Shown in pieces: positions 46,436 through 63,866 of a stretch of 64,000 nucleotides of DNA. How positions within the stretch are numbered: position 1 is the first letter of the stretch; every line of letters begins with the position of its first letter. A model generated the notes under the pieces. That model was not told the DNA's origin, made no database searches, and saw nothing but the letters and a program-made list of their open reading frames with translations. The translations under genes and the position numbers were made by a program. The stretch is taken from positions 248,001 to 312,000 of IMG/VR virus record IMGVR_UViG_3300017917_001342. One strand, written 5' to 3'.

Positions 46436-46557
46436 CTAATGATTCTCCGGGCTATGCTTGGAATATTTAGTCAAAATGACTGTACAGATACCAAATCAAT
46501 AAATATCGAGTAGTTGCATATTTGCACTACATAGATTATAATTTCTTTATAAGGCAA

Positions 46558-46600
46558 AGTGGTCTAAGACGCTCATCCCACTCTAAATACTCTGCGTGTC
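46558..46600 (+). ncRNA. Candidate preQ1-I-like riboswitch
   Basis: AGUGG-UCUAAGACGCUCAUC-CCACU-CUAAAUA..GCGU pseudoknot directly upstream of queD. Confidence 0.5.
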
Positions 46601-46627
46601 GTCAAACTTACTTATGAAAGGCAAGAG

Positions 46628-47143
46628 ATGACAAAATACGAACCAGTACATTACAAGTACACCAGCACCAAAGAATACCACGACGCATTTCCCTGTGCTT
46701 ATCGACAGTGGCGTGCAGACAGTCATTGTAATCTAATTCATGGTTACAGTTTTAACATGAAATTTTACTTCGGTACCAATGATCTTGATGCTCGTAATTG
46801 GGCTGCTGATTATGGTGGACTAAAAGAACTAAAACGTTTCTTAGAAGATCAATTTGACCACACTCTGCTGGTTGCACAAGACGATCCAGAATTTGAATTC
46901 TACAAAGAAATGGAACGTCGTAAGCTGGCAAAACTCACTGTATTACCAAAACTAGGTTGTGAAGGTCTAGCAGACACACTTTACAAATATGTAAACGGTG
47001 TTTACATTCCAGACATGTGGGGTCCAGGCGAAGCTGCAAGACTGTGGTGTTACAGAGTCGAAGTTCGAGAAACACAAAGCAATATGGCTTTCCGCGAAGG
47101 TCATAGAGAATGGGAAGAAGATCTTTTTGCAGATTACAAGTAA
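46628..47143 (+). CDS. queD: 6-pyruvoyl-tetrahydropterin synthase / QueD-like protein
   Basis: SHCNLIHGYS, DYGGLK, FDH, EVRET. Confidence 0.8.
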   Translation: MTKYEPVHYKYTSTKEYHDAFPCAYRQWRADSHCNLIHGYSFNMKFYFGTNDLDARNWAADYGGLKELKRFLEDQFDHTLLVAQDDPEFEFYKEMERRKLAKLTVLPKLGCEGLADTLYKYVNGVYIPDMWGPGEAARLWCYRVEVRETQSNMAFREGHREWEEDLFADYK

Positions 47144-47146
47144 AAT

Positions 47147-47173
47147 AAAAGCCCCGCTTAGCGGGGCTTTTTT
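47147..47173. terminator. Bidirectional terminator
   Basis: aaaagccccgc-tta-gcggggctttttt. Confidence 0.85.
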
Positions 47174-47822
47174 ATGACAACAACATGCTTTTTTGATGCC
47201 CTACTCTTATAGTAGGATCAACATATATAGTTTCACCTATGTCTGCTGCACTCCAACAGAATCCCACATCTTCTGCCGTAAACTCTGAAAACACACCGTC
47301 TTCTACCCACCGTGGCCTAAACCATGGGTATTCCATACGTTCCATTACGCCTTTGGCAACTGCAACAAATCCAAAGCCAACATAGTTTGCAGTGAACAGA
47401 TTGGTTCTAGAATCGAGCTCACTGCGCTGCATAAAATCAAACTTGCCGTTTTTCAGTAGATTATTGTAATCAAGACGTTCGACTATGGGAAACTCATTGA
47501 CATTTTGTGTTGGGTAACAGCCACTAACAATGGGTTTGTTGTGCGATAACAGTTTTAGTACGTCTTCACCTTTCCATACAATATCACTGTCAATCCATAC
47601 TTGGTAATCGTAGTCAATATTGCCACCAAATGGTTTTTGTTTTCTACCGTCTACATTGTTACCACCTAGTACGCGATTTCTTGCATAGTACACAACTGGA
47701 TCATAAGCAACACTAAATGCCCATTCTATATTGTTTGCACCGCAAGTGGTAATAGTGTCTGTCCATGACCGCATCCAAAGATCACTAAATTCTCTGCCGG
47801 GTACACAAAATATTACTCTCAT
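47172..47822 (-). CDS. GT-A-fold glycosyltransferase-like protein
   Basis: YARN, WIDSD, GFGF, EDVGFC, VGHQK. Confidence 0.7.
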   Translation of the reverse strand: MRVIFCVPGREFSDLWMRSWTDTITTCGANNIEWAFSVAYDPVVYYARNRVLGGNNVDGRKQKPFGGNIDYDYQVWIDSDIVWKGEDVLKLLSHNKPIVSGCYPTQNVNEFPIVERLDYNNLLKNGKFDFMQRSELDSRTNLFTANYVGFGFVAVAKGVMERMEYPWFRPRWVEDGVFSEFTAEDVGFCWSAADIGETIYVDPTIRVGHQKSMLLS

Positions 47823-47868: not shown

Positions 47869-49161
47869 TTACCAAATAGTTTCGCCGTTTCTTTTTACAA
47901 CAGCAGTGTAGGTTCCGTCAGTATTCCTAGACACATATAAGCGTTGTTTGATAAAACCGATTACATCGCCAACACTGTATTGATTTGATCTGTCTTGTAC
48001 GTCTTTTAGACTTTGTTTGTACACTTCTTCTATATTGTGTATGTCTAAAACACTGCCATCTTCTTCATTGGCTTCTTTAGCATATTCTCTAACTTCGTCC
48101 GGAGTTAGATCTATAGCATCTTCTATTGTGTCAAATATACCACGTGCTTCGTCGTTGTAAGATAGATAACTGGGTGCATCATCTGTTATTTCATCGTCGT
48201 CGTTGACATAGCCTTCGCTACGCAACCACTCGTAATAGTAGTCGTCATTGGTTTCCCAATCGCTTAGCATTTCGTATACATAATCCATCAACAGTTCTTT
48301 TATTTTTTTAGTCAATGGTACTAGTATTTCGTCGGGAGCAAATTCCAACATGCGATCGAAGTATTCTGGGTGTCGTTCTTTAAAAAAGTCAAACAGTTCA
48401 GGAAAACGTGTTCTAAGCAGCCAGGTCAATCCCACTGCATCGTCGTCTTCATTCATAAACTGTTCACTTGGAAAGTGTAGTTGATACTTTTCACCATCAT
48501 GTTCAGGGTTCTTAGGTATCAATATGTACAGCGGTCCTTGACGGTTATAACGTTCAAAGTAATTGGTACCATGAGTAGCAGCAGTACACCAGCGAGTACC
48601 TCGGCCATATCTACATGCTGCTGGTTCATCTAGTGGATGTACAATTGCAACTTCTGAGCTATCGTAGATTTTTTCTGCTCGACCCTTGTCGGCATCATCT
48701 TCAACGTCTTCGTATTCGTCCATTCTATCTAGAAATTCGTCAAATGTCTTGTAGCGATTAATGTCATTGAATGGTGCAGCTATACGCTTTTTGCGATTGA
48801 GTTTGTCAAACTTGGCAAGATATGTTGCAACAGTACTGACCATATCTTCTATCTGCGTGATTCTTGTATTTTGTGGTGATGCAAATAGTCTAGCCATCCA
48901 CTGAGTATACTTTTTATTTGGCGACGGATCAGCAGCTTCAAACTGTTCCATAGCTCGTTCTGCAAAATCATTGAGGCTGTCAGGATCTGATGCTGCATCG
49001 TGATATAATGGGCTATTTTTAAGTTTATCGGCTAATTGGTTCAAAGGTGTCGAATATAAACCAACTGCATCACGTAGTGCAGCTAATCCTAAATTTGGAC
49101 CTATCGCAGCAATAGCACGAGCGCGATCATATTCTAGTAATAGTAAAGTTTGTATTTTCAT
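47869..49161 (-). CDS. Jumbo-phage hypothetical protein, possibly internal to the virion
   Basis: MKIQTLLLLE N-terminus; DPSPNKKY, CRYGRGTRWCT, KYQLH; acidic C-terminal half. Confidence 0.7.
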   Translation of the reverse strand: MKIQTLLLLEYDRARAIAAIGPNLGLAALRDAVGLYSTPLNQLADKLKNSPLYHDAASDPDSLNDFAERAMEQFEAADPSPNKKYTQWMARLFASPQNTRITQIEDMVSTVATYLAKFDKLNRKKRIAAPFNDINRYKTFDEFLDRMDEYEDVEDDADKGRAEKIYDSSEVAIVHPLDEPAACRYGRGTRWCTAATHGTNYFERYNRQGPLYILIPKNPEHDGEKYQLHFPSEQFMNEDDDAVGLTWLLRTRFPELFDFFKERHPEYFDRMLEFAPDEILVPLTKKIKELLMDYVYEMLSDWETNDDYYYEWLRSEGYVNDDDEITDDAPSYLSYNDEARGIFDTIEDAIDLTPDEVREYAKEANEEDGSVLDIHNIEEVYKQSLKDVQDRSNQYSVGDVIGFIKQRLYVSRNTDGTYTAVVKRNGETIW

Positions 49162-50264
49162 CGTTCGAGCTCATCTGCTACTATTAGGTTGCCTTTTCTG
49201 ACAAATTTTCTCAAACCATCTGCTTGTATAAGTTCGTGAGTGCGTTCGTCAGTTGGATAGACTTTACATACTTCTAATTCATTTTCCCAGGTGTACTCTG
49301 GATTGGGATCGCCTGCTTGCCAATCGTCAAATCCCTGTTTACCATCGGCTAACGCAGTCTCAGGAGTCTGGCCGGTACCCCAAGCATAATCTTCACTGGG
49401 ATTGCCAAAGAAATACCACTCGGCTTTGGTTTGTGGTATTGGGCCAGCTTTTTCTTTTGGACGATTCATAGTAGTTTGATCGTAATAGACTTTACCGTTT
49501 GATCTATTTTCGATTCGTATAATACGAGTTTTACCTTTGAATCCTATGTTGCGTGTAACTCTAACTGTGTCAGATTCAATAGGTTTAACTGTGGCAAGTA
49601 CATTGTACATTGCGGTTTCGAACGCAGGGGTATGTCTAATGTCATTTAATATGCGAAAACTTACATAATTTCTAAATTTACTAGACGATTGCTTCTTATT
49701 GACAATATGTCGTAAAAATACAGTTGCGAGTACTCTTATTTCAAGTAGCGCATTGCGATTCAATTTGATTTTTGTAGGTCTGGCATTGTATTGGCGCAGG
49801 TTTATTTTAGTTGGATTTAAAAATGCCTGTTCAACATGCGTTAATGCGTTTTGAAAATTTTGTTTGTTTGAATAGTATGCCGAAGCGTCTTCTACAGATT
49901 CAATTGCTGCGGGTGTTGAATCTAATATAGACTCAGTTAATATTGCCATAATATCATCTTCGTCTATAGTACCTGAACTTATCACATACTGTAGAGTTAT
50001 TAAAACAGGATCACCGCCATGTGCAGTAGATGCGTTGTCTGCACCTTCTTCTGCTTTGTCTAAGTCAGAAGTTAGATACACACCGCCTTTAAATGTATCA
50101 TATCCACCAGTATCTACATTAGTCTCTCTACTGTATGTGGATTTTGGTGGATTAGCTAATAATCCGTGCTTTAGTATACTAGGTACTAGTGCGCTGCTAG
50201 TACCATGATACATGGTTTGAACACGTTGTATTTTTCGTTCGGTGAGGATGTCGTTGATTTGCAT
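49158..50264 (-). CDS. ADP-ribosyltransferase-like protein with capsid-targeting-like N-terminus
   Basis: Start MQINDILTE just after TATAAATA; MYHGTS, ILKHGL, GVYLTSD. Confidence 0.6.
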   Translation of the reverse strand: MQINDILTERKIQRVQTMYHGTSSALVPSILKHGLLANPPKSTYSRETNVDTGGYDTFKGGVYLTSDLDKAEEGADNASTAHGGDPVLITLQYVISSGTIDEDDIMAILTESILDSTPAAIESVEDASAYYSNKQNFQNALTHVEQAFLNPTKINLRQYNARPTKIKLNRNALLEIRVLATVFLRHIVNKKQSSSKFRNYVSFRILNDIRHTPAFETAMYNVLATVKPIESDTVRVTRNIGFKGKTRIIRIENRSNGKVYYDQTTMNRPKEKAGPIPQTKAEWYFFGNPSEDYAWGTGQTPETALADGKQGFDDWQAGDPNPEYTWENELEVCKVYPTDERTHELIQADGLRKFVRKGNLIVADELER

Positions 50265-50268
50265 CCAA

Positions 50269-50276
50269 TATTTATA
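50269..50276 (-). promoter_or_regulatory. T4-type late promoter
   Basis: Exact TATAAATA. Confidence 0.65.
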
Positions 50277-50523
50277 AGCAAGATAGCTTGAATAACAGTT
50301 GTTCTTCTTGACTGGCAAACCCTATGTATGCATGATTTGCATCAAACCACCACGCCCAGGGTCCTTGGCAGTTTACATCACACCATTCTATTAATTCATG
50401 TTCTATAGTTGGTATTCTGTTGTCGAAGAGCGATGTATGTTTGTAAACATACGGTACATCATTAGGCGGGAGATTATCCCGCCTAAATTTGCTTTCAACT
50501 GACTTACGCAGGGAAGAAGTCAT
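50272..50523 (-). CDS. Paralogue-family small protein
   Basis: EWCDVNCQGPW...FASQEEQLLFKL. Confidence 0.65.
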   Translation of the reverse strand: MTSSLRKSVESKFRRDNLPPNDVPYVYKHTSLFDNRIPTIEHELIEWCDVNCQGPWAWWFDANHAYIGFASQEEQLLFKLSCL

Positions 50524-52235: not shown

Positions 52236-52312
52236 TGGTAGGGGATGCAGGACTCGAACCAGCAACCTACGGATTATGAGTCCGGCGCTCTAACCAATTG
52301 AGCTAATCCCCC
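52236..52312 (-). tRNA. tRNA-Ile2 (anticodon CAT, lysidine type)
   Basis: GGGGGATTAGCTCAATTGGTTAGAGC..CTCATAA..TTCGAGT..ACCA cloverleaf; adjacent to tilS. Confidence 0.85.
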
Positions 52313-63384: not shown

Positions 63385-63718
63385 AAAACGGCAGTTTGAT
63401 TCTGTTTCCAAGTCCAAACTGCCAAAAACTCATTTACGCTGCGAGAGCGTAAGAAGGTGCAACGTTATCGTTTGCAACTGTTGATTTTCTTGCGTTAACC
63501 GAGCTTGCGCCGGGCAACTCCACTCACATAGTCCGCCTGTCGATCCTATTTCGAGCCCATCAAGAATACACACCGTGATCTAAGGCCGGAATTCCCGCCC
63601 CTTGACGTATCGAAGTCGCTGTCCAGTTTCCCGAACTATTTCGATACATGTGTACTCTTGGTGGACCCGCTGGGTACCGCCCCCAGGTCCAGAACGTGTT
63701 CCGTTTGCTTCAACGTTA
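63385..63718 (-). ncRNA. ssrA: Two-piece (circularly permuted) tmRNA
   Basis: Acceptor piece ending GGACCTGGGGGCGGTACCCAGCGGGTCCACCA (63659); coding piece starting GGGCTCGAAATAGGATCGAC (63558); G3.U70 pair; tag ANDNVAPSYALAA* at 63434-63475; terminal hairpin 63390-63423. Confidence 0.9.
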
Positions 63719-63723
63719 CAGTG

Positions 63724-63754
63724 TATTTATAGCTTCACTTTTTTGGTTTGTCAA
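63724..63754 (-). promoter_or_regulatory. tmRNA promoter (sigma70 with overlapping late motif)
   Basis: TTGACA-17-TATAAATA. Confidence 0.7.
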
Positions 63755-63866
63755 CTGGTGTTTTTTCTAACTTCTTGTCTTGCTTAGTCTGTTCTTCTAA
63801 ACATTCTGGACAAAATTCTGAACCGTATTCTGCACAATCTTTACAATGGTCTTTTTCTTTTTTCAT
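63735..63866 (-). CDS. 43-aa CxxC..CxxC peptide (not in ORF track)
   Basis: MKKEKDHCKDCAEYGSEFCPECL; ATGA overlap. Confidence 0.5.
   Translation of the reverse strand: MKKEKDHCKDCAEYGSEFCPECLEEQTKQDKKLEKTPVDKPKK

Follow-up and report, generated by a model that had tools for sequence, protein, structure and literature searches.

The analysed stretch (hereafter designated the window) comprises 64,000 nucleotides, corresponding to bases 248001-312000 of a 518,643-bp IMG/VR virus record with direct terminal repeats. Within it, a 192-nt gap (46436-46627) separates two divergent genes, that is, a 385-aa ORF with a flagellin IN motif on the - strand and a 171-aa ORF (46628-47143) of the PTPS/QueD family on the + strand, the latter being assigned by Pfam PF01242 (3e-15) and phrog_2389 'QueD-like' (2e-35), whereas TIGR03367 scored below its threshold. 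The features of the gap and its surroundings, with the pairings in the register supported by the family described below, are as follows.

46514-46542 (+), promoter-like TTGCAT, 17-nt spacer and a perfect TATAAT (46537-46542), with the predicted transcript start a few bases before P1
46558-46562 (+), P1 5' strand, AGUGG, pairing with 46578-46582
46563-46567 (+), L1, UCUAA, whose second base, C, is invariant in the family
46568-46572 (+), P2 5' strand, GACGC, pairing with GUGUC at 46596-46600
46574-46575 (+), P2a 5' strand, CA, pairing with UG at 46593-46594; the preceding U46573 lies opposite C46595
46576-46577 (+), L2, UC, whose C is invariant
46578-46582 (+), P1 3' strand, CCACU
46583-46592 (+), L3, CUAAAUACUC, A-rich and near-invariant
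46593-46600 (+), P2a 3' strand UG, then C, then P2 3' strand GUGUC
46597-46603 (+), UGUCGUC, 5' arm of the predicted alternative helix, overlapping the P2 3' strand by 4 nt
46617-46621 (+), Shine-Dalgarno (SD)-like AAAGG inside the predicted alternative hairpin, aligning with AAGGAG in relatives
46627-46633 (+), GAUGACA, 3' arm of the predicted alternative helix, including the start codon at 46628-46630
46628-47143 (+), phage-type QueD-like gene (171 aa, T-fold, with a CxxxHGY motif)
47147-47177 (no strand assigned), G+C-rich hairpin followed by a T run

The -35 element was too weak to be detected in a consensus promoter scan. The hairpin behind the gene was listed by the scan on the - strand but is followed by TTTTTT on the + strand, and could serve as a terminator for both convergent genes, which would make queD monocistronic here.

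The preliminary description had proposed a preQ1-I-like pseudoknot in this leader, and every feature listed there is present in the sequence: AGUGG (46558-46562) pairs with CCACU (46578-46582), the 15-nt loop UCUAAGACGCUCAUC starts with U and ends in CAUC, the tail CUAAAUAC follows, and ACGC (46569-46572) can pair with GCGU (46594-46597). On this sequence alone, however, these features were no better than chance. The region did not fold better than shuffled sequences (RNAfold z-score, 0.08), no Rfam 15 family matched at the gathering score, and the PreQ1 model (RF00522) gave only 11.2 bits against a cut-off of 39 (E about 5 for the genome), one of five similar sub-threshold hits in the genome, covering only model positions 6-32, that is, the P1 hairpin. 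Searches at E up to 10 of the window and of six relatives returned no family other than this chance-level hairpin hit, and the six relatives themselves gave no PreQ1 hit.

Comparison with relatives changed the picture. A scan of IMG/VR for relatives of the QueD-like protein gave 588 stretches, of which 80 were kept. Their aligned upstream regions differ in the promoter part and become nearly identical from the first base of P1, whereas blastn homology begins only at 46573. Pattern scans added more than 120 contigs of the AGCGG/CCGCU form, at least 119 of the window's own AGUGG/CCACU form, and two sets of rarer variants. In all, more than 300 IMG/VR phage contigs carry the element, with 227 distinct sequences. 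A covariance model built from 114 of them found the element in all 77 protein-anchored loci having enough upstream DNA and exactly one copy in the window's own genome, in front of its only PTPS gene, although the window was in the training set. Thus, the observation made in the preliminary description is confirmed, by comparison with relatives rather than by the sequence itself.

The conserved fold is an H-type pseudoknot. P1 (5 bp) is 100% paired in 101 model-aligned sequences, with its top two G-C pairs invariant and compensatory changes at three positions (A-U/U-A, G-C/C-G, and C-G/U-A). The variable part of P2 (4-7 bp), whose 3' strand follows directly after the conserved UCUGC, covaries at every position, for example GGCAU:AUGCC, GGCG:CGCC, GGUG:CACC, GGCU:AGCC, AUGC:GCAU, and GACGC:GUGUC. 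Two sequences suggested a further pair between the C of L2 and the G of UCUGC, and scans aimed at variants confirmed a conserved 2-bp extension, CA:UG (P2a): about 7 distinct UCUAC sequences all have UUA in L2, and about 35 distinct UCCGC sequences all have UCG, so that C-G becomes U-A in the former and A-U becomes G-C in the latter, with no unpaired case. On the 101 sequences, 96.6% of cells are paired and 10 of 12 pairs have changes on both sides; no shuffle (0/500) reached the observed values, and slid controls paired at 52% or less. P1 and P2a were not in the model's structure, and hence their counts, with no unpaired cell, are not fitted to it. On a MAFFT-only alignment of 114 sequences, covariation likewise exceeded all 500 shuffles and all slid controls. 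The frequent G-U pairs fit an RNA read from the + strand.

Several alternative pairings were considered and dropped. The ACGC/GCGU register of the preliminary description is possible in this one sequence, but is contradicted by the UCCGC and UCUAC variants, which are compensated in L2 and not in the P2 5' strand. A local hairpin between GNC after P1 and the P2 5' strand is inconsistent across sequences. AUGCU as the P2 partner in type iii leaders (see below) was rejected because true Watson-Crick covariation is with the segment directly after UCUGC, and pairing of UCUGC with the P1 5' strand shows no covariation.

In the protein-anchored set, the unpaired bases at the junction are invariant or nearly so, namely the second base of L1, the last C of L2, the adenines of L3, and the UC before P2a. 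Because most of the other sequences were collected with patterns that fix parts of L3, L3 conservation is unbiased only in this set. Two L3 positions (4 and 6; 46586 and 46588 in the window) correlate with the third P1 pair (46560/46580): leaders with C-G at this pair have L3 UA(U/C)AAAY, or rarely UAAAAAY, whereas those with U-A have UAAA(U/A/C/G)AY, the one exception seen being the leader at position 4108 of contig L301, with UACAAAC. This may reflect a base triple between L3 and P1, or shared descent.

The element is linked almost exclusively to phage-type QueD genes. Of 247 distinct leaders, 236 lie directly before a QueD-like ORF; of the other 11, five are start-calling errors, and the five examined of the remaining six have a QueD-like gene next. 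One contig has two copies about 800 nt apart (L301:4108-4157 and L301:4901-4950), the first preceding a 236-aa gene with no Pfam match and the second preceding QueD. Other downstream genes vary widely, although some loci also carry QueE-like genes and, at L113:4820-5458 and four similar loci, a Vut_1 gene (YhhQ-like queuosine-precursor transporter family) directly follows QueD. As QueD is the only gene shared by all loci, it is the obvious candidate if the leader were instead bound by a protein, that is, QueD itself or a phage or host translational regulator recognizing the pseudoknot, much as T4 gp32 uses the 5' pseudoknot of its own mRNA. This possibility is considered unlikely, because the element is small, with invariant junction bases, and is reused modularly with different platforms and promoter classes, which is the riboswitch pattern; moreover, T-fold enzymes are not known to bind RNA.

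In 198 of 272 related leaders, a -10-like or T4-late-like box ends 5-14 nt before P1, indicating that the element begins at the predicted transcript start. Many leaders follow T4-late-like promoters, which would also be compatible with protein-mediated control. The 5'-terminal position further raises the possibility of a structural element needing no ligand, such as a cap-like pseudoknot that stabilizes the mRNA, sets a fixed translation level, or senses temperature, and the energy gap between the two alternative folds is indeed modest. However, a stabilizer would need neither about 15 invariant unpaired bases, nor a partner-swapping design kept across platform types, nor restriction to a single gene family, and we regard this reading as the least likely. 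In public sequencing runs, the phage was found in many freshwater metagenomes, but the one run labelled RNA looked like DNA and gave no transcript ends. In one pond metagenome, summed contig depth over 46572-46605 was 489 against 14.7 in the flanks (33 times), showing that many co-occurring related phages share the core.

The element is joined to at least three types of expression platform with one shared logic. In each type, RNAalifold predicts a helix whose 5' arm overlaps the P2 3' strand: in type i (the window), UGUCGUC with GAUGACA (GAUGGCA in relatives), which covers the start codon and is also found in the MFE fold of the window; in type ii, UGCCAUUG with CAAUGGCA, which also covers the start codon; and in type iii, CCUAUG with CAUAGG, which covers the SD. 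Covariation within each platform helix is slight. In type iii leaders (e.g., L011:2862-2960, a stretch of a related contig), the loop of the SD-hiding hairpin is itself conserved as UGCUAUAAU, which reads on DNA as an extended -10 box (TGnTATAAT) and could be an internal promoter giving a transcript that lacks the element. In a partition-function model, blocking the P2 3' strand raised the accessibility of SD plus AUG from 0.34 to 0.55, with a rise in 93% of 252 leaders, whereas shuffling only the anti-start segment raised it only to 0.38. Formation of the pseudoknot is therefore predicted to free the ribosome site, although this direction is an inference resting on nearest-neighbour models without pseudoknot energies.

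These results bear on the proposal in the preliminary description that the leader is a preQ1-type switch giving feedback on deazaguanine or pterin synthesis. All known preQ1 classes are OFF switches on Q-pathway genes (PMC11625349), the P1, UC, and tail of the window match the RF00522 consensus, and some loci carry the QueE-like and YhhQ-like genes mentioned above. However, the SD is 15-40 nt downstream of P2 and is not part of it, and in every platform type forming P2 removes a partner of the SD or start codon. Feedback repression is thus not supported, and a divergent preQ1-I aptamer in which ligand lowers translation remains an unlikely alternative. On the other hand, an ON switch in front of a biosynthetic gene is unusual, and no natural ON-type preQ1 riboswitch is known.

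The pathway context was examined in the window's own genome. It encodes FolE and, nearby, a QueE-like radical-SAM protein (phrog_2076, 1e-47; TIGR04322, 1e-20, sub-threshold), but only a weak QueC-like hit was obtained, and searches with Pfam and with proteins of Pseudomonas phage Iggy gave no TGT/DpdA match. The link to phage DNA modification is therefore not supported for this genome. Of 232 putatively regulated proteins, 224 carry CxxxHGY instead of the canonical CxxxHGH, as does the QueD of phage Iggy, which lies in a QueE-QueC-QueD-FolE-DpdA cluster; hence, the protein looks like the usual phage QueD. The genome also gave 24 matches to the radical-SAM domain, 19 of them above the Pfam cut-off, with clusters at about 87-101 kb, 144-151 kb, 376-387 kb, and 453-457 kb, many in arrays of adjacent genes and at least one of the B12-binding methyltransferase type. 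At 63390-63758 (-) and 52239-52312 (-) of the window, it carries a two-piece (permuted, alphaproteobacterial-type) tmRNA gene, at 101 and 97 bits, well above gathering, and also a tRNA gene. A 386-aa ORF at 49158-50318 (-) has a weak, sub-threshold match to the PARP catalytic domain (E 7.6e-4, 19.5 bits against a cut-off of 26.7).

The family appears to be undescribed and is found almost only in uncultured phages. Searches by blastn of the locus and of two of the elements against GenBank phages gave only chance matches inside coding regions. Among 185,579 bacterial and archaeal species genomes, one pattern, which misses the UACAAAY forms, gave four true hits, all on MAG contigs of 8 kb or less, and 7 chance hits. 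Full-text literature searches, in an incomplete collection, found no paper describing the element.

Collectively, the 5' leader of the queD-like mRNA has the hallmarks of a small-molecule aptamer, namely a conserved, covarying 5' UTR fold with invariant unpaired bases, a consistent gene association, and variable expression platforms, and it most likely acts as a translational ON riboswitch (estimated probability, about 0.55). What the analysis establishes is the fold with P1, P2, and P2a, the near-invariant unpaired bases around the P1/P2a junction, the almost exclusive link to phage QueD genes, the attachment of one element to several platforms, and the dual use of the P2 3' strand, which in the predicted folds of every platform type is also one arm of a helix covering the start codon or the SD. 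Ligand binding and its effect on expression, by contrast, are inferred. Presumably, a ligand with a guanine-like face docks between P1 and P2a against the invariant C46577, as in preQ1-I, candidates being a 7-deazaguanine such as preQ0, CDG, or preQ1, or a pterin such as the QueD substrate H2NTP or its product CPH4. In this view, binding would lock P2, keep the anti-start segment occupied, and open the ribosome site, whereas without ligand strand exchange would close it. The interpretation given in the preliminary description is accordingly only partly supported: a pseudoknot before a phage queD gene, resembling preQ1-I but with a longer loop, holds, whereas membership of RF00522, the pairing register, feedback repression, and, for this genome, DNA modification do not find support.

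A bolder possibility, which we hold only doubtfully, is a new riboswitch class confined to phages that reuses the preQ1-I pocket architecture but senses a different molecule, for example H2NTP or another pterin or 7-deazapurine intermediate, and turns translation ON, which would give phages feed-forward control of 7-deazaguanine synthesis. New riboswitch classes are now rare finds, and a phage-only class with hundreds of members would be unusual. The element sits on the first committed enzyme of 7-deazaguanine synthesis, a pathway that phages use for DNA modification and possibly to change host tRNA modification, and it could reveal which pathway metabolite phages monitor during infection. An ON-type relative of preQ1-I would show how one small pocket can be rewired, and the element is also a compact part of about 50 nt for engineering.

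Among known systems, THF-II (folE motif) and other pterin- or purine-sensing riboswitches control the neighbouring steps of GTP-to-pterin metabolism and recognize the 2-amino-4-oxo face of the ligand, but their fold is different, and no Rfam model for them matched here, even at E up to 10. The T4 gene 32 mRNA leader is likewise a compact H-type pseudoknot at the 5' end of a phage mRNA that governs translation of the gene downstream; that one is a nucleation site for its own protein product (gp32), whereas here the junction bases are invariant across many phage lineages and the predicted platform swaps pairing partners. The closest known system is the preQ1-I riboswitch (RF00522, types I-III), which is also an H-type pseudoknot with a 5-bp P1 closed by G-C, located upstream of queuosine-pathway genes. 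The RF00522 consensus aGuGGUUCG...UCCCaCuAUAAA aligns with AGUGGU...UCCCACUCUAAA of the window, and the P1 sequence is close to the consensus aGuGG/CCaCu. The element differs from preQ1-I in length (43-50 nt instead of about 34), in its P2 of 7-10 layers instead of 3-4 bp (a conserved CA:UG, a U-C mismatch, then 4-7 variable bp), and in L1, which begins N-C (the first base being A, U, or C) and lacks the conserved U (UU in types I and III) on top of the P1 5' strand. It differs also in the P2 3' strand, which is an anti-start or anti-SD segment, and in the predicted ON logic, and its true examples found here are IMG/VR phage contigs or small MAG contigs. In preQ1-I, which binds preQ1 (and preQ0), the P2 3' strand contains the SD, or the aptamer controls a terminator, and ligand turns expression off. 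L3, which is 10 nt long, is A-rich (UAYAAAY or UAAANAY) after P1 as in preQ1-I, but an invariant UC and the P2a strand come before the variable part of P2. The specificity cytosine directly 5' of the P1 3' strand, preceded in preQ1-I by U or A (PMC11625349), has its counterpart in the C of L2, which is preceded mostly by U, as in type I, and which the family keeps without exception.
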